From Vicugna vicugna (Eukaryota), in the NCBI GenBank assembly GCA_013265495.1, contig MU061748.1, positions 21,405,235 to 21,469,234 of the forward strand: a stretch of DNA of 64,000 nt, read 5' to 3'. Shown in pieces: positions 38,956-60,526 of the stretch; the first letter of the stretch is position 1; the number at the start of each line of letters is the position of its first letter. Position numbers and translations under genes: made by a program. A model generated the notes under the pieces. The model did not search any database. It had not been told where the DNA came from and saw nothing but the letters and a program-made list of their open reading frames with translations.

Positions 38956-39135
38956 CTGGCAATGTTTTCTAAAAATATAAAATGTATTGTCTGAAACCAT
39001 TTAAGATGAGTCTGCCAAAATGGACTGACTGAAACTGCAATGTCTTGTCCTCATTTATGCTGTGAGAAGCAATGATTCTTTAACATTACTAACCAACCTC
39101 CCCTCTGGGTGTGTGTGTATTGTTCATGTCTTCAG

Positions 39136-41006
39136 GTATAGCAGTAAGAGGAGAACAAGGTATTCCTGGTCCACCAGGCCCTGTTGGACCTCGAGGGCAC
39201 CCAGGTCCTTCTGGACCACCAGGAAAACCAGGCACTGGAAGTCCAGGACCCCAAGGAGAGCCAGGGTTGCCAGGACCGCCGGGACCATCAGCCACTGGGA
39301 AGCCAGGTTTGACAGGACTCCCAGGAAAACAAGGAGAGAGAGGACCATCTGGACCAAAAGGAGATATTGGACCAGCTGGTTTACCAGGACCACGGGGCCC
39401 ACCAGGGCCACCTGGAATCCCTGGCCCAGCTGGAATTTCTGTTACAGGAAAACCTGGACAACAGGGACCTACAGGAGCCCCAGGACCCAGGGGCTTTCCT
39501 GGAGAAAAGGGTGCACCAGGAGTTCCTGGTATGAATGGACAAAAAGGGGAAATGGGATATGGTGCTCCTGGCCGCCCAGGTGACAGGGGTCTTCCAGGCC
39601 CTCAGGGTCCCATGGGACCACCTGGCCCTCCTGGGGTGGGAAAGAGAGGTGAAAATGGGCTTCCAGGACAGCCAGGCATCAAAGGTGATCGGGGCTTTCC
39701 AGGAGAAAGGGGGCCAACTGGCTCACCAGGCCCCCAAGGTCCTCCAGGGGAACAGGGACCAGAAGGCATTGGAAAGCCAGGAGCCACTGGAGCCCCAGGC
39801 CAGCCAGGGGTTCCAGGGACAAAAGGTCAGCCTGGGGCTCCGGGAATAGCAGGGCCCCCAGGTGCTCGTGGCTTTGGGAAACCAGGCTTGCCAGGCTTGA
39901 AGGGACAAAGAGGACCTATAGGCCTTCCAGGGGCTCCAGGTGCCAAAGGGGAACAAGGCCCAGCAGGCCATCCTGGGGAACCAGGTCTCACTGGACCCCC
40001 TGGAAATATGGGACCCCAAGGGCCAAAAGGCATCCCAGGCAATGATGGGATCCCAGGGCCTAAAGGTGAGACAGGGCCAGTGGGGCCTGCAGGATACCCT
40101 GGGGCTAAGGGAGAAAGGGGCACCTCCGGGTTAGATGGAAAACCAGGGTACCCAGGAGAGCCAGGTCTCAATGGTCCCAAAGGTAACCCAGGGTTACCAG
40201 GCCCAAAAGGTGACCGTGGAATTGGAGGACCTCCTGGTCTCCCAGGCCCTGTGGGCCCAGCAGGAGCTAAGGGATTGCCTGGACACAATGGTGAGACTGG
40301 TCCAAGAGGTGCCCCTGGAATACCAGGTACCAGAGGCCCCATTGGACCACCAGGCATTCCAGGATTCCCTGGATCTAAAGGGGATCCAGGAACTCCAGGT
40401 CCTCCTGGTCCTGCTGGCATAGCAACTAAGGGCCTCAATGGACCCACTGGGCCACCAGGGCCTCCAGGTCCAAAAGGCCATGCTGGAGAGCCTGGCCTCC
40501 CAGGGCCCCCAGGACCCCCAGGGCCCCCAGGCCAAGCCGTCCTGCCAGAGGGTTTTGTAAAGGCAGGCCAAAGGCCTTTTGTTAGTGCCAACCAGGGAGT
40601 AACAGGAATGCCTGTGTCTGCTTTCACTGTTATTCTCTCTAAAGCTTACCCAGCTATAGGCAGTCCCATCCCATTTGACAAGATTTTATATAATAGCCAG
40701 AAGCATTATGACCCAAGAACTGGAATCTTCACCTGCAAGATACCAGGAATATATTATTTCTCCTACCACATACATGTGAAAGGGACCCACGCTTGGGTGG
40801 GCCTGTATAAGAATGGCACCCCTATAATGTACACCTACGATGAATACGTCAAAGGCTACCTGGATCAGGCTTCAGGTAGCGCCATAATCGATCTCACAGA
40901 AAACGACCAGGTGTGGCTCCAGCTGCCCAATGCAGGGACAAACGGGCTGTACTCCTCTGAGTATGTCCACTCCTCTTTCTCAGGATTCTTAGTAGCTCCG
41001 ATGTGA
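39136..41006 (+). CDS. COL10A1: COL10A1 exon 3 coding part: 463-aa triple helix (39150-40538) and 155-aa C1q-type NC1 domain; full protein 674 aa
   Basis: Gly-X-Y repeat with the 8 imperfections typical of collagen X (GTG, GPSATG, GISVTG, GYG, GVG, GIG, GFG, GIATKG) and two G|I collagenase-type sites. NC1 runs [15 protein letters not shown]...FSGFLVAPM to TGA at 41004-41006. 154+1871=2025 nt. The true exon starts after the AG at 39134-39135, not at the track's 39111. Confidence 0.99.
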
Positions 41007-43021: not shown

Positions 43022-43103
43022 CCTTAAAAGCTGACATTTTATAATTATATTGTATACCAGCAACTACATCCTTCCAAAAATCAAATGGTTTTTGACCGTT
43101 GTG
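43022..43103 (-). CDS. NT5DC1: NT5DC1 coding exon 6; the following intron 6 extends past position 1
   Basis: T14-AG acceptor, then 82 nt encoding HNGQKPFDFWKDVVAGIQYNYKMSAFK plus G, then a GTGAGT donor. I found no exon-7-like sequence between 1 and 43021, consistent with the large COL10A1-containing intron 6. Confidence 0.93.
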
Positions 43104-44519: not shown

Positions 44520-44599
44520 CTTTGTTAAGGAGTCCACCACTCTGGCACAGAGAAGAGCTCCAGGCAGGTCAAAGTAGTTATCATAAAAATAGTATTTTC
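44520..44599 (-). CDS. NT5DC1: NT5DC1 coding exon 5
   Basis: Acceptor ...ttctttttag, then 80 nt encoding (G)KYYFYDNYFDLPGALLCARVVDSLTK, then a GTGAGC donor. Lies inside track ORF 44457..44681. Confidence 0.96.
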
Positions 44600-48786: not shown

Positions 48787-49459
48787 TACTTCCAACTGAA
48801 CAGAGAACAGGCATCTCCTATCACTTGAGTAAAAGGCAATCCACCCATTTAACTCCCACTAGCTGAGCTGAGATGTGTGAAAGCATTCTACACCTAACCC
48901 CAAGGCGAAAATCCCAGTTTTTTCCTATCAACTTATTTTATCCAGATAACTCATACTTCCCAACATTTTCGCCTCCCTGCAACAAAACAAACTCCCAAAA
49001 GGTAGCAAATGTAGCAAACAAAAACACAACAGTAATAAGGAGTAACTCCAACTATTTTCCAGTTACTGCGCTTTTCTAAAGGAAAACAGGTGCCCTTCAA
49101 AGCGGCAGGGTGAAATGGGGGATGGAGAAATAAAAGTGAAGACTGAGCATGTCACACATCGCTAAAAACACAGAACGACGAATGGATCATTCCTAAGTGC
49201 TAGGCTCCTTTACTCCGGAACCAGCGCAAGTAAAAGGAGAATCAACAAAATGTGAAATAGAACAGAACCAACCGCGGAAGAGAAATTTAGCCACACATGT
49301 GGGAAAAACGCATCCTATTCTTATAAAACCCCAGCTGCTCCCTCGTGCAGCCTGCCCAGCAGGCGGCAGGGAGGGTGCTCCTCGCTGGCCTCACGTCACA
49401 GGTCCAGGGTCCAAAACGGGAAGGGGGACTGGGGGCGCCGCCCCTCGCAGGAGCCCTAC

Positions 49460-49566
49460 CTGACCGGCAGGCCACGGCCGCGTCCGCCGGGAAGTGCCTC
49501 CACTCCCTCCGGCCGTACTCCTCCGCCAGCGCCTCCGGGGCCATCATCCGCGTGCCGTGGCTGGCC
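49460..49566 (-). CDS. NT5DC1: NT5DC1 coding exon 4 (unusually GC-rich)
   Basis: Acceptor ...ccccaaaccag, then 107 nt encoding (R)ASHGTRMMAPEALAEEYGRREWRHFPADAAVACRS(G), then a GTAGGG donor. Lies inside track ORF 49287..49616. Confidence 0.93.
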
Positions 49567-51605
49567 CTGGTTTGGGGACAGGACGCTTGCTGCTCATCCG
49601 TGGCTCCAATGAACACCCCTCCTCCAGCCTTGCTACTGCTAATTCACCCTAAAACTAGTACCCGTTTTTTAAAAAGTGTTTTCACCTGGGTGACTTTCCC
49701 ACTGAGGATTCTATAAGGCCTTTCCCTTGACAGCTCTCGTCCTTCCTCCATTTCATCCTCCAACCAGCAAGCGATCAGGCGCCACTCGAAGGTCAACGCC
49801 GCGGTAGTTGCTTGCTCTGACCTATAAACTCTAATTTCCCTGGGAGAAATATGCCACACCGCCCTTGCATAAGAAGTTGCCAATTAACTATGAAGATGAG
49901 CAGCGGGGTCAGAGCACACGGGTCGCAGGCCGGGCTGAGCACAGGGGCTGCGAAGACAACAGGGCAGCAACCCACCGCCCAACGACATGCCGCAGCTAAA
50001 AACACAAAGGGAAACGGCAAGGCGAAGGCGGCAGAACGTAGAACAGCAAAGCAGAAGGGCAGCTATTCTTTGTGTTCAAAATGCTGCTTCTGCATCAGTT
50101 GGGCCTGGTAAAGAGAATCTTACCTTGTAAATTTTATGCAGCTGCTATTTTATGCAGTTTACTATGAGAAATTAGAATGCTAAGGAGTGTCATTATTCTC
50201 TTGGTGTTCTATTGTGGCAGCAGAGCAAAATGAAGGGACAAGGAAACAAAATAAGAAGGGCAAATAGATTAAAAAAATCACAAAGGGATCCTTTTTATAA
50301 AGTGGTTAACATTTTAGAAAGCTTTATGTAAAAGTGCACGAACCCTGAGTGGGAAATACGATTAGACCAGGAATCTACTGTATTGTTTGAAAGGAGGCAT
50401 TGAGGAGACAAACTCCTAAGTTCAGGAGAAGCTGCAGGTTAGCTAGAAATTGACTAGAGAAGGTCGGACTTTAGGGAAAGGGTATTGGGAATAGGGACAA
50501 ACAGACAGACATAACAATGAAAGAAAAGAAGCAAAACTATGGAATGCTTTCTATTCTTTTAACCATGACTGAAGACAGCCACGTACACTGTAAGAATCTG
50601 ACAGCAGCATTAAAGGTCATGGTCAAAGCTGCACTGTGTGTGTATATATACATACACACAGTCCATCTCTAGTTGCCTGAGGAAAAACATGTAAATGAAT
50701 AGCAAAGTAATCAGGAGTGGAACCACACCTGTTCTAGCAGGCAGCGCCTTAGCAGACGGTCTGGGGGAGAGTGTGAGTTTGTAGTATGCAAAAAGAATGA
50801 TGTACAAAAGGGAGAGCACATACAAGGGGTGACCCGTGCTGAGCGTCCTCTCCTTGGACTCTGAACATGTCAGTGTAAATAATAAACCGCACAGCTGCAC
50901 GGTCATGTTGACCTGCCTGTACTGTCAGTACTTGGGGGGAAAGATGCTCACTCCATGGTGCCCCCATAACACTGAGAGCAGCTGCTTCTCAGTTGCTTGC
51001 CCTACTCTAACCAACACTCAAAGTATTGGATTCATCTTGAGAAGAGGGAGGGAAAGAGAGTCAGCACTGAGTACGGGAGCAGAGAGACACTGATGAAGGT
51101 TGGAACAGTCCAGAAACACTTCCAGAAGGAGCTGAGACACAACACGAGTCCTGTGTGATGGGGACAAATTTGGATAAACAGAGGAAGAGAGGTGTGCAGA
51201 GACCACCAACTGCTATTCAACATGTGTTCTCCCCTTCTTCCTTAATAAAAAAAAACTTCTATTTTATTCCTACATGCCCACCTAACACAATGTAGTTCCC
51301 AGGCTCTTTTGCAGTAGGAGTGGTTAAGAGGATAAAGCAAGTTATTTAACATTCTGCTATATTTCCTGCAGATATTACTGATGAGCTAAATTTAAAGAAC
51401 TAGATCTTTCAATCCAACGCTCCCAGATTTATATTTAAATAGCTCAAATGACTCATACAAAGACATGAAGGCACACTGATAATCTGTCATCTGATCAACT
51501 AAAGTAATAATCTTGTTTACCTCAGACCTTAACAATCAAATGCTATACAGTAATAGAGTGTCTTGGAAAGAATAAAGTTTTGACTTCACAACTAAATTTT
51601 ATTAC

Positions 51606-51677
51606 CTGAGCACGGAGCCATTATCTGCAAGTTTAATGAAGTTCCCGTCTTCCAGATCCAATGCCAGGCCCTTGCAA
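51606..51677 (-). CDS. NT5DC1: NT5DC1 coding exon 3
   Basis: Acceptor ...ttttctattttag, then 72 nt encoding (C)CKGLALDLEDGNFIKLADNGSVL(R), then a GTAAT donor. Frame is continuous. Confidence 0.95.
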
Positions 51678-53097: not shown

Positions 53098-53189
53098 CAG
53101 AAATCCCAATCCTCTGGAGTCACAGTGAGCAATTCCTTGTCATACCCTTTCTCCTTGACCAGGAACTCAGCAAAGCTATTATAAATGAG
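53098..53189 (-). CDS. NT5DC1: NT5DC1 coding exon 2
   Basis: Acceptor ...ttatttacag, then 92 nt encoding LIYNSFAEFLVKEKGYDKELLTVTPEDWDF plus TG, then a GTGAGC donor. Phase is compatible with exons 1 and 3. Too short for the ORF track. Confidence 0.95.
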
Positions 53190-56379: not shown

Positions 56380-57345
56380 AGAGGCACTCACAGTGATCCG
56401 CGATGCAGCCGCCACTGCCATCTCCAGCATCAGCTCCTGCAACTCCCACCTTCTACTTGACATCCAGCAGTTCCAGCCACTGTTTCTTACCTCCAGGTCC
56501 TTGCCCTGGCCATATTTCCCCTGCCCAGAATGCTCCTCTCTGCCTCCTCACCTGCCAACCGTAACTCCTGTGCTAGAACCCAGCTCAAGCATCACTCACT
56601 CCAAGGCCTCTCCTCTGGGCTTGGCAGTGCACACAAAGCATGGTGATGGGGGACAGAAACCTGCCAGCCAGACCACCTAGCTGGGTGACTCTGGCTAAGC
56701 TATTTATCCTTTTTCTGACGTATTGTCCTCATCTCTAGGTGATGATAACATCAACCTCACACAGCTGTTGTGAGGATCAAACCAGTTTATACAAGCAGAA
56801 TACTTGTTAGAAATAATGGCTTAAGTGCCATATTCAGTTATCAAAATGTCTATTACTTATTCAATCACTCCACAATTATTTATTGAACCTCCTATTGCCA
56901 AGTAGTCAGCTCGGCACACAGAACACATGAAAACTGTCACAGACACTAGTGTCAAGGGGTCATGGCTCTAGGCAAAGACTGCAAGGAGTAAACAGGAAAA
57001 TTTAATGTTGTGTGTCAGTGCTATGAGAAATCAAGGTTTTTATGGAAAACTGGAGGTGGGATGGGACAGAAGGGTAAACTTTAGGGAGCAGGGCTATGTA
57101 AGATGAGACCTGCCAGATGAGGCAGGTTAGTATGACGTTAGTATGACGGAGGGAGGAGGGCCCCAGACACAGGTAACGAATAGCCCGCAGCAAGGTCCAG
57201 GCAATGCTGCCCTCACCACCGGGGACCAAAACTGACTTTCAGCATCTTTACCCTTTACAAGACCACCTAAGGCCTGTGTTAGCTCTGCGTCCCCAGCTCT
57301 GTCGTAGTGCTCAGCACACTGCTGGTACTTAATAAAATGTTTCTG
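56380..57345. mobile_element. Cluster of L2 (+), MIR (+, about 56675-56840) and L2 (- and +) fragments
   Basis: L2 text (ccctgcccagaatgctcctc; ttattcaatc..tttattgaacc; gtacttaataaaatgttt) and MIR text (ctgttgtgaggatcaaa). Approximate. Confidence 0.6.
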
Positions 57346-57964
57346 ACCCTAACAGGATCCAAACCGCATTAGGTTGGTGTTTTCAACCTTTACACATCAC
57401 TTATGTTCAAGGCTTGAGGTAAAGAACTCTTATCTTTTGAGGATCTTGTATTCTGAAACTTTATGCTGAGACATACACAAAATTCTCTTAAGATGTCAGT
57501 TCAGTGGTTTTAGCAGTATTTTTCTCCAATGAAGGTGACTAGAGAGATGCAAGAAAACACTAATCAGAAGATCTGAAAGGCAAAGGGAAGGAAAATTAGA
57601 ATCAAAGACCTAGAGGAAGTAGTGGCCAAAGGCTCAAGAAGAAAAGTCTCCTTAACTCTCAACATGACTAAGGAAACACCTGTATAGCAGAAAAGTATAA
57701 TAGCAGGAACAGTAGAATTTTTTTTTTCTTTTTAGCCTCCGTGCATAGAAAACATGAGTAATTCAGACACTGTTCTGACCTTTGACAGGTACCTAAACTG
57801 CTGATTGGGGCACTAACCTCTCCATAATGAGGAGCAGCCCTGGGTGATGTCTGCATCAGTGGCCTAGAATTCTACCCTTAAATAGTGAGGCTTGTAAATG
57901 GTTTGGGTGGTGATTCGACAAGTAAACACTTGTATGTGTCACACACAGCTCTTAGATACCCTAT

Positions 57965-58125: not shown

Positions 58126-58479
58126 GTCCTTGTTTTGACTACCATAAACAGCTTTTTCCACTTGGATACTTAGACCATTGACTTTTTTAAAAAATCTGTT
58201 AATTTTTCACAATTAGTTTCCTTGTGAAACCAAAGAAATGGGGGAAGGAGAACAATTCGCTTAAGGGTACAGGTGTGGAACCACACAGACTTGACTTCCC
58301 GCTCTCTCCCAAAGTGCAGTGAGGACGCAAACTTCGCAGGCTGTGGCTGGAACTAGAACTTACTCAAGGTGCATGGAGCACGCAGTTGGTAAGCAATGTT
58401 TATTTCTTACTCTTGGTAAAAGGCAAAATTAGGACTAAGATCTTAATGACTTTTCGGTTAGTCTTCCTTCTTACACACC

Positions 58480-59530
58480 ACACAATCCCTCCCGACTGCA
58501 GTGCTTAAAAACTGACAGGTGGTCGTAGGGATGTACGAAAGAAAAAAAACGCAGCCAAGAAAAATACAAGTCTCTAACCAAGTGGCTGTGTCGGCGCTCC
58601 ACTGGCGGCCAGAATGATTAGCTGAGAAGTTCCAAGGTCGGGGATCTGCAAAGGACACCCCCAGTTCCCCAGCCCCGCCCTTCCTCTGCCCCAGGAACCG
58701 TTTCCCCAGCCTGATCTGATCTTGAACGATTTGACCTTCCTTCGCCCCTTGTCTTCCCTACCCATCTGTCAAACTTGGCTAAGGTATGGGCTAAATAAGC
58801 CGGTACCCAAAGCACGGGCGGGGACCGGGGGATGCACACTCCGCTCCGCCTCGCGGGGGGAGGCCGCGTTCTGCGCAAAGGCGCTGCGGCTGCAGGGCCC
58901 CGGCGACGCTCGCCGCCGCCTAAGCCGGGAGGAAACTCGAGCCCCAGGCGCCATGGAGGCTGCACGCCGTACGCCCCGGCAGCCCGCGCCACTCACCCGG
59001 GCGCTCTCGGGCAGGTTGTACCGACACAGAGTGTGATCCAGGTCGAAGCCGACCACGTCGCAGGCGGCCAGGGAGAAGTGCTGAGCCATAGCTGCGCGGG
59101 GAGCGCCGGCGAGCGTCCGGACGCGGGGACCAGCAAGACGCGGGCGGGCCGGCGGCTGCGGGACTAGCCCGGCAGGACGGGGCGGGGCGGGGCGGGGCGG
59201 GGCTGCGGCCGCCCCCTGGACGCCGCGCGACCGCCTCTCGCGTTTCCCGCGCTCGCCAGCGCCGCCCCCGGCCACGCTTCTGCCTGCCCTCCGCGGCCCG
59301 CCTTCCCCGCGCCCAGCCGGGCGGGTTCGCCGCCTGACGTTCACGCTGGTGCCCGCACGCCGGCTTCTGCCGCACTGTCACCTCCCTCATCCCCACCCCC
59401 GAGTCCCGCAGGCGGGATGTGACCAGGAGCCGCTTCTGCCGGAACTGGGGGCTCAACTAAGCCCCTGTTGGCACATAGCCTTGCCACAAAATTAACCGGG
59501 GCTCCCCTTCGCTTCCGAGGCATCAGGGAA
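58480..59530 (-). promoter_or_regulatory. NT5DC1: CpG island and TATA-less promoter of NT5DC1
   Basis: Dense CpG and very high GC spanning exon 1. Tandem GC boxes (GGGGC)5 at 59179-59203, TGACGT CRE-like half site at 59335-59340, ETS-like CTTCCG near 59512. Edges approximate. Confidence 0.85.
58997..59089 (-). CDS. NT5DC1: NT5DC1 coding exon 1 (5'-nucleotidase domain-containing 1, HAD superfamily)
   Basis: ATG at 59089. The 93 nt encode MAQHFSLAACDVVGFDLDHTLCRYNLPESAR, including HAD motif I (DxDxT = DLDHT). GTGAGT donor at 58996-58991. Matches the NT5DC1 N-terminus as I recall it. Confidence 0.97.
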
Positions 59531-60526
59531 ACCAAGAAACTGTCAAGTTACACCAGACCCTTTACTCTTGTGTGGGGAATAATACAAGATTTACGGAGAA
59601 AATTTCATCCACTAATATCCGTCTCACCCAATTAGTCTATTATTTGGGGAAAAAATTTTTTTTGGCCCACAAGGTTTCTAATTATGAGTTGCATAGACAG
59701 TTTTACATTCCATAGTATATTCCTAAGTATATTTCTAAGCAGTAAATGGGAGACCTTTCAACACCCCCTGGAGCACATTAGAAAATAAATTTATTAGAAA
59801 TCGTGAAGGACCGTTTTGCAAAATGACAATGATTAAGAAAACCAATATTGGTTATTTCTTTATTTGATTATCCTATTTTTTACTGTAATGAAGAATTTTC
59901 TTTGAAAGGACATTAGAAACTTCAGAGAACATACTACAGAAAGTAGAACTTTATGCAGACAGAAGATTTCACAGTTTATAGAACACACAATGATTTGAGT
60001 TACAGTGTTCTCAATTCTCTCAAGGACTGTGTGGAGCTAGTATCATTTTTGATGCATAGGAGAAAAGTTAATTCATTAAGTACAGCAGATGCTCAGGGCA
60101 TTTCATTCTAAGAACCCTTGGATATAAAGGTCGAGGACTTTGAGATCTTGAAAATCATTTAAAAGAGAAGATACAAATCTGGACATTAAAAAGAGGAAAT
60201 ATAAATTTATTAACTTTGTACTCCTGTTTTACATTTAAAAGAACACTTTGTCTAATGGGGAAAAAAATCAATAGCTATAACATGATGAAAATATAATTGA
60301 TTGGAAATTATATTTAACCCTTACAATATTAAGCCTTATGAGGCCAATAGACCAATCAAAAATTAATTAAGTGCAATAAATAGTTCAATCTGGTAGGACA
60401 CTTATCATACCTAGTGGATCCATTTGAATAAATTGATAACTTGTTCCATTATGACACTTAAAAGCCCCAAACAAATCTCTCTGGAATAGAAACAAGAAAG
60501 AATCTTCAAGATTAAGCTGTTCACTG

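Follow-up and report, generated by a model that had tools for sequence, protein, structure and literature searches.

A long-lived bias toward G and C at exon 4 of camelid NT5DC1, likely reflecting gene conversion at a CpG-island-type hotspot

The window, by which we mean the whole 64-kb stretch of DNA analyzed here, carries exons 1 to 6 of NT5DC1 on the minus strand, together with the only two stretches of CpG-island grade found in the 64 kb, one at the gene's promoter and the other around exon 4. All six exons were placed by spliced mapping of the alpaca protein, and the share of codons ending in G or C (GC3) is given for the internal exons other than exon 4.

58997-59089, minus strand: NT5DC1 exon 1, coding part, which holds HAD motif I (D16-L-D18-H-T)
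53098-53189, minus strand: NT5DC1 exon 2, GC3 17/30
51606-51677, minus strand: NT5DC1 exon 3, GC3 14/23
49460-49566, minus strand: NT5DC1 exon 4, 107 nt, residues 87-122, supported by ag/gt flanks and translation as well as the spliced mapping
44520-44599, minus strand: NT5DC1 exon 5, GC3 12/26
43022-43103, minus strand: NT5DC1 exon 6, GC3 6/27
58461-59599, no strand: canonical NT5DC1 promoter CpG island, GC 0.656, CpG observed/expected 0.90, 110 CpG
49176-50146, no strand: intragenic CpG-island-grade region, 971 bp, GC 0.556, CpG observed/expected 0.70, 52 CpG

Alpaca NT5DC1 (XP_072821870.1) is 100% identical to the window over exons 1-6, including 36/36 residues of exon 4, and over the same exons Camelus NT5DC1 differs from the window and alpaca protein by D114E and V161I. 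These identities place the window in a New World camelid, most likely alpaca; an origin from dog was considered and dropped, a canid SINE motif having 0 matches. With a 35-residue query from exon 4, phmmer matched nothing among 1.84 billion representatives but fragments and isoforms of 5'-nucleotidase domain-containing protein 1, and a second search yielded named NT5DC1 orthologues vertebrate-wide. The alpaca protein matches Pfam PF05761 (5_nucleotid) at E = 7e-58, with 197 bits against a cut-off of 28.5, and its closest solved structures are cN-II-type nucleotidases. HAD motif I is intact in camelids, and D16, D18 and T20 are invariant across orthologues. Set against other NT5DC1 proteins (PF05761, haloacid-dehalogenase superfamily), the camelid protein is thus a regular orthologue that keeps all invariant residues; it departs from the others in exon 4 only, and there at positions that vary among vertebrates.

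Several other features share the locus. The last exon of the collagen X gene, COL10A1, lies at 39111-41006 on the plus strand, where a 631-codon open reading frame encodes Gly-X-Y repeats and a C-terminal C1q-like domain. It is nested antisense in NT5DC1 intron 6, and an antisense collagen X gene inside NT5DC1 is what we take to be the expected arrangement at this locus. Whale and camel genomes carry an opposite-strand gene of 674-683 residues within the NT5DC1 range, which is probably COL10A1. The collagen X exon has a GC content of 0.55-0.58, yet fails the CpG-island criteria. On the minus strand, 57214-57348 is an extra coding segment in alpaca model XP_015095942.2 and dromedary model KAB1275488.1, and as a segment between NT5DC1 exons 1 and 2, read from 57348 to 57214, it could be an in-frame cassette exon. 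A further coding segment in XP_015095942.2, at 59304-59456 on the minus strand, is a predicted upstream extension inside the promoter island. Scans of the 64-kb window for tRNAs and Rfam families gave no match.

Exon 4, the reverse complement of 49460-49566, encodes the peptide ASHGTRMMAPEALAEEYGRREWRHFPADAAVACRS and is 82/107 G+C (77%), with 14 CpGs and a GC3 of 34/35. These counts, and the GC3 values of exons 2, 3, 5 and 6 listed above, reproduce exactly those of an earlier sequence-only reading of this DNA, which had singled out exon 4 as its most anomalous signal. The sole codon ending in A or T is the last one, TCA, whose A sits in the caG|gt donor consensus. Because this lone A/T third position belongs to the splice donor, all free third positions of the exon are saturated. 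The difference from the pooled internal exons (34/35 versus 49/106) is extreme (Fisher p = 1.6e-8). It is also visible in a camel mRNA contig of about 3 kb that encodes the complete protein (452 codons, GC3 0.48), in which the windows over exon 4 have the highest 35-codon GC3 of the coding sequence. Both the exon 3-exon 4 and the exon 4-exon 5 junctions are present in this contig, so exon 4 is spliced into mature mRNA.

The exon 4 sequence is genuine and no artefact. Words sampled from 48900-50300 occur at a share of 0.81-1.00 in at least 14 DNA runs, which come under four organism labels, and an independent dromedary assembly has an exon 4 that is identical at 106/107 positions, with the same GC3 of 34/35 and with 13 of the 14 CpGs unchanged. 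The dromedary assembly and the camel mRNA contig agree on the same exon with the same junctions, and the sequences flanking exon 4 align to goat and panda introns. Misassembly or contamination, which the sequence-only reading had raised against itself, has a next to negligible chance of accounting for the signal, and the DNA runs, the dromedary assembly and the mRNA contig rule it out.

The compositional anomaly is broader than the exon. We scanned the window with sliding-window criteria of the Gardiner-Garden and Takai-Jones type, the basic rule being at least 200 bp with GC of at least 50% and CpG observed/expected of at least 0.6, and the stricter one 500 bp, 55% and 0.65. Under the stricter rule the exon 4 island occupies 49032-50038, and GC is raised from about 49200 to 50100. 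The description of exon 4 as a single-exon spike therefore has to be given up, as the rise in GC spans about 1 kb (the 971 bp of 49176-50146). The other possibility named in the same reading, a CpG island, fares better, since exon 4 does lie in a CpG-island-grade region. The retention of 13/14 exonic CpGs between the window and dromedary is compatible with hypomethylation in the germline, for which it is not diagnostic.

We compared exon 4 DNA and flanks with those of dromedary, goat, a second bovid, giant panda, another carnivore, a canid, a pangolin and a Myotis bat, taken from short isoform models and from short contigs containing exon 4; several of the contigs were placed in their lineages by how closely their peptides matched named orthologues. 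For pig, whale, hippo and horse the comparison covered protein only. GC3 is 34/35 in the window and dromedary (13-14 CpGs) and 33/35 in the canid (14 CpGs); it is 29/35 in goat, bovid and Myotis (5-7 CpGs) and 22/35 in panda, the other carnivore and pangolin (4-5 CpGs). Exon 4 is the GC-richest internal exon in all six of these last lineages, and a small GC/CpG peak lies over it in each of them except pangolin. The orthologous stretch of island grade measures 808 bp in dromedary and at least 1294 bp in the canid, is marginal at 207-386 bp in goat, bovid, panda, the other carnivore and Myotis, and is absent in pangolin. A similar GC3 richness of exon 4 across mammals, which the sequence-only reading had named as a finding that would refute it, is thus present in part, with 22-29/35 in six lineages and 34/35 in camelids. 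That exon 4 is GC-rich and fast-evolving in many lineages indicates that part of the signal is old and common rather than camelid-specific.

Camelids and canids, however, brought exon 4 to GC saturation. The canid contig (positions 1-1302, exon 4 at 705-811) is of island grade throughout, with GC 0.66, CpG observed/expected 0.75 and 106 CpGs. Six of the camelid changes from A/T to G/C recur in it, including the two-step ATG>CCG that turns Met into Pro, and in canid proteins (Vulpes, Nyctereutes) 9/17 lineage-specific changes fall in exon 4. Canids reached a GC-saturated exon 4 independently of camelids.

To describe the direction of change we denote A/T to G/C substitutions as W>S and the reverse as S>W. 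Sites were polarized by site-wise agreement of at least 70% of outgroup rows, which yields counts only, from rows that are not independent, as goat and bovid, and panda and carnivore, are close pairs. Exon 4 positions 23 and 99 were not counted as camelid changes, their derived state being common to ruminants and Myotis. Along the camelid stem exon 4 gained 11 W>S changes and 1 S>S change, with 0 S>W, among 35 W and 58 S polarizable sites (Fisher p = 6.8e-6), and a rule that polarizes by agreement of goat and panda gives the same counts. The changes are also clustered: 12/86 sites changed in exon 4 versus 8/391 in exons 1-3, 5 and 6 (odds ratio 7.8, p = 2e-5), a substitution density about 7 times that of the five other exons. 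Synonymous third-position T>C and A>C changes are among them. The W>S bias that the sequence-only reading had proposed as its check is thus borne out, clustered as expected and extending to synonymous and intronic sites. Other lineages run the opposite way in exon 4, with W>S to S>W ratios of 1:3 in ruminants, 1:6 in panda and carnivore, 1:6 in pangolin and 2:5 in Myotis; pooled, non-camelids have about 5 W>S versus 20 S>W.

The flanks within 400 bp on either side of exon 4 were counted in the same way.

Camelid stem: 55 W>S, 27 S>W, implied equilibrium GC about 0.64
Ruminants: 9 W>S, 19 S>W, implied equilibrium GC about 0.30
Pangolin: 23 W>S, 41 S>W, implied equilibrium GC about 0.33

These flank counts are less reliable, especially beyond about 150 bp from the exon, because noisy intron alignment makes GC-richer sequence look W>S-biased. 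Within 150 bp of exon 4 the bias on the camelid stem is weak, with 6 W>S versus 4 S>W upstream and 5 versus 4 downstream.

The most robust test of direction is that between the window and dromedary, owing to an alignment identity of about 97-98%. Camelus and the window have 11 or 12 of the camelid changes in exon 4 in common, and the 106/107 identity of the two exons places almost all of the change before the split between Old World and New World camelids (Camelini and Lamini). The recency suggested by the sequence-only reading is consequently not upheld: the change is common to Camelus and the alpaca-type window, and is old and family-wide. The bias did not end there. From -400 to +500 of exon 4, the window lineage has accumulated 12 W>S and 0 S>W changes since the Camelus split, 11 of them in intron 4, versus 4 W>S, 2 S>W, 2 W>W and 1 S>S on the dromedary lineage.

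49070-49418, no strand: intron 4 flank, 11 W>S versus 0 S>W changes on the window lineage alone after the Camelus split

Several of these intronic changes create new CpGs, for example at 49418, 49344, 49217 and 49070. Without polarization, sites from +107 to +1000 at which the window has G or C and dromedary A or T outnumber the reverse by 24 to 5, and over the rest of the 6 kb compared between the two the classes are balanced. A one-way W>S drift within intron 4 argues against selection on the protein.

What this drift did to the protein can be read from orthologue alignments. The sequence-only reading counted about 12 of 36 exon 4 residues as differing from the human peptide; the peptide that it gave is identical to the exon 4 part of a database NT5DC1 protein, from which the window differs at 12/36 residues. 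An excess over the other exons is likewise seen against a catarrhine monkey orthologue, with 11 differences in exon 4 and 1-5 in each of exons 1-3, 5 and 6. As a measure of camelid acceleration, though, the 12 differences have to be divided: eight are replacements on the camelid stem (K92R, K106R, K109R, M112P, S113A, T115A, G116A and M117V), and T95A, V98A, A102E and K105R are states common to other Laurasiatheria rather than camelid-branch changes. The eight are all W>S-driven, toward residues with GC-richer codons (Arg, Ala, Pro, Val). They represent 8 of about 22 residue departures shared by camelids, in 36 residues that make up 8% of the length, versus 14 in the other 415 (p = 1e-4). Accelerated protein change is partly a general feature of this exon. 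The camelid share of 8/22 exceeds the 44/323 lineage-specific changes found in exon 4 of 12 other lineages combined (p = 0.009), and those 44 are themselves 1.7 times what the exon's 8% of length would give. Column entropy tells the same general story, at 1.38 for exon 4 versus 1.00 for the whole protein and 0.70-0.74 for neighboring exons, which puts exon 4 in the top 16% of 36-residue windows.

The columns that hold the eight replaced residues are all variable (entropy 0.59-2.68), and the invariant or near-invariant A87, G90, T91, Y103, G104, W108 and F111 are retained in camelids. Structural modeling, another of the proposed checks, locates five of the eight replacements within residues 107-131, a segment without secondary structure at pLDDT below 50; the AlphaFold model, built with 52 orthologues, is weak (mean pLDDT 57), and its evidence that 107-131 may be a loop is poor, if compatible with one. 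By a crude count, per-site rates of replacement and silent change in exon 4 are similar, and both are several-fold above those of the other exons, which suggests that constraint has been overridden or is absent, rather than that adaptation has occurred. Rat and other muroid NT5DC1 proteins have an insertion in the exon 4 region, and the second half of their exon 4 has been extensively altered (for example ...WRHCLSDKRSVSGSDIPCCSG), a further sign of weak constraint on that half. With all conserved residues intact, the consequences for the NT5DC1 enzyme are probably small.

The island around exon 4 also holds a predicted alternative start to the gene.

49686-49756, minus strand: alternative first exon, coding part (MKWRKDESCQGKGLIESSVGKSP), to which the N-terminus of dromedary isoform X2 (XP_064342826.1) maps
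49567-49685, minus strand: intron from the alternative first exon to exon 4, 119 nt, donor at 49685-49684

This exon lies inside the island, 119 nt upstream of exon 4, and its translation and cag|gt donor are confirmed in the window. Isoform X2 is a computational gene model, whose predicted product would be without exons 1-3 and HAD motif I. Among the lineages compared, camelids alone have the GT donor, the corresponding sequence being cagTTg in goat, panda, the other carnivore and pangolin and caaTTg in Myotis, and its G at 49685 is a camelid-specific T>G, and hence W>S, change. In at least 10 RNA runs the share of words present is 0.20-0.26 for 49689-50100 and 0.22-0.26 for 48900-50300, which would fit a single contiguous RNA that covers about 350 nt between roughly 49810 and the exon 4 donor. 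A protein search for the alternative isoform, Logan included, yielded nothing beyond the known camelid cluster and an unrelated open reading frame from bat genomic DNA.

Two known systems offer a frame for these observations. In human genes, exon-scale W>S clusters mimic accelerated protein evolution (Berglund et al. 2009, PMC2631073), and such W>S-biased, clustered exon hotspots have been attributed to GC-biased gene conversion, or gBGC (PMC2631073; Kostka et al. 2012, PMC3278478). The camelid changes resemble them (PMC2631073, PMC3278478) in being clustered, almost all W>S and spread over an exon and its flanks, with replacements carried along in a way that looks like accelerated protein evolution. 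They differ in that the human clusters reflect recent, short-lived hotspots, whereas the camelid tract is family-wide, continued to be active after the split and sits on a CpG-island-grade region. It also resembles PRDM9-independent hotspots at CpG islands or hypomethylated loci and the GC peaks of canids (Berglund et al. 2014, PMC4350167; PMC11161765), being a stable local GC/CpG peak at a promoter-like locus. In canids, which have no PRDM9, recombination takes place at CpG islands and gBGC is strong (PMC4350167, PMC11161765); the orthologous canid NT5DC1 exon shows the same saturation as the putative camelid hotspot. Joseph et al. 2024 infer that PRDM9-independent hotspots are active in most placental mammals, leaving gBGC peaks, and that such hotspots are conserved at hypomethylated loci and evolve slowly (PMC11161765). 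The main text of that study does not name camelids (PMC11161765).

We consider it probable, if well short of certain, that the localized tract at exon 4 is the product of a long-lived W>S fixation bias, likely gBGC at a CpG-island-type hotspot. The composition of the tract, the direction, clustering and timing of its substitutions, their spread into non-coding flanks and the canid parallel are observed. We infer that gene conversion at a recombination hotspot, and not mutation, is the source of the bias, although a W>S bias in mutation would leave counts of the same kind, and that the exon 4 locus is hypomethylated in the germline. In such a scenario, an old GC- and CpG-rich nucleus on exon 4, common to Laurasiatheria, would have been the starting point. 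On the camelid stem, W>S changes would have gone to fixation until no free third position still had A or T, after which the bias would have carried first- and second-position changes through at weakly constrained residues, giving three Lys>Arg, Met>Pro, Ser>Ala, Thr>Ala, Gly>Ala and Met>Val. The camelid island would have expanded to about 1 kb, and the bias would have gone on in intron 4 of New World camelids after the Camelus split. Canids would have come independently to the same end state at the orthologous exon. The bias would be seated at a recombination hotspot associated with a locus that is CpG-island-like and probably hypomethylated. A W>S push lasting tens of millions of years in camelids fits gBGC and not adaptation. 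The exon 4 tract is then a further instance of a known process, at a locus for which we found no earlier report: literature searches on NT5DC1 with gene conversion returned nothing relevant, and searches on PRDM9 status or the positioning of recombination in camelids found nothing.

Other accounts place the cause elsewhere. The region could be a functional intragenic CpG-island promoter for an N-truncated NT5DC1, its composition the outcome of hypomethylation together with promoter-linked selection or mutation, and conversion secondary or absent. That exon 4 and its surroundings pass CpG-island criteria, that the first coding exon of dromedary X2 falls inside the island just 119 nt upstream of exon 4, that the RNA word shares would fit an RNA of about 350 nt up to the exon 4 donor, and that 13/14 exonic CpGs are unchanged between the window and dromedary all speak for such a promoter. 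Hypomethylation, however, slows the loss of CpGs and provides no source for non-CpG changes such as AAG>AGG, TAT>TAC and ATG>GTG; the W>S run since the split falls in intron 4, on the downstream side of the exon and at a distance from the putative start; and the isoform is a computational model that would miss HAD motif I. The alternative donor itself arose through W>S drift, which suggests that the promoter-like features are a consequence rather than a cause. We hold this account to be unlikely as the primary explanation, while noting that a promoter and gBGC are mutually compatible. A bolder version of the conversion account, which we would advance only as a tentative possibility, is that the same locus has been a long-lived PRDM9-independent hotspot in camelids and canids independently, and that gBGC there grew a nucleus of 200-400 bp into an island of at least 1 kb and made the camelid GT donor.

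A more sober view is that nothing lineage-specific has taken place, exon 4 being weakly constrained and ancestrally GC-rich, with camelids at the upper end of ordinary variation. A GC3 of 22-29/35 in six other lineages, in which the exon is a local peak save in pangolin, speaks for it, as do the 44/323 changes in 12 lineages (1.7 times the length share) and the place of exon 4 in the top 16% of windows for entropy. Weak constraint predicts neither a direction nor intronic W>S change, though, and the other lineages pooled, at about 5 W>S versus 20 S>W, run against the 11 versus 0 of camelids, whose 8/22 also exceeds the pooled 44/323 (p = 0.009); we accordingly think this view has a rather low chance of being sufficient. 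Positive selection on the function of camelid NT5DC1 would account for eight replacements in 36 residues versus 14 in the other 415 (p = 1e-4). Yet every replacement came about through W>S change toward residues with GC-richer codons, synonymous and intronic sites shift likewise, the replaced columns are the variable ones, five of the eight replacements fall in residues 107-131, unstructured at pLDDT below 50 in a weak model, and the crude rate estimate gives no excess of replacement over silent change. Selection is in our view very improbable as the driver, and gBGC at a CpG-island-type hotspot remains the reading that we prefer.

This has a practical side, in that exon 4 of camelid or canid NT5DC1 would probably come out as adaptive in a branch or branch-site test. 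Against such a call stand the direction of the changes, their spread into the intron and the variability of the replaced columns. The graded size of the island, from none in pangolin through 200-390 bp in several lineages to about 1 kb in camelids and at least 1.3 kb in the canid, forms a comparative series for the birth of CpG islands, and possibly of promoters and splice sites, through biased conversion. Should the tentative account of a hotspot used independently by camelids and canids be true, the locus would be a natural case of gBGC building a promoter-like element and a new isoform inside a gene, and camelids, like canids, would rely heavily on CpG-island hotspots. A tract that Old and New World camelids have in common, and whose activity outlasted the split between them, points to a hotspot far longer-lived than those directed by PRDM9, and a hotspot of such longevity bears on how camelids position recombination.
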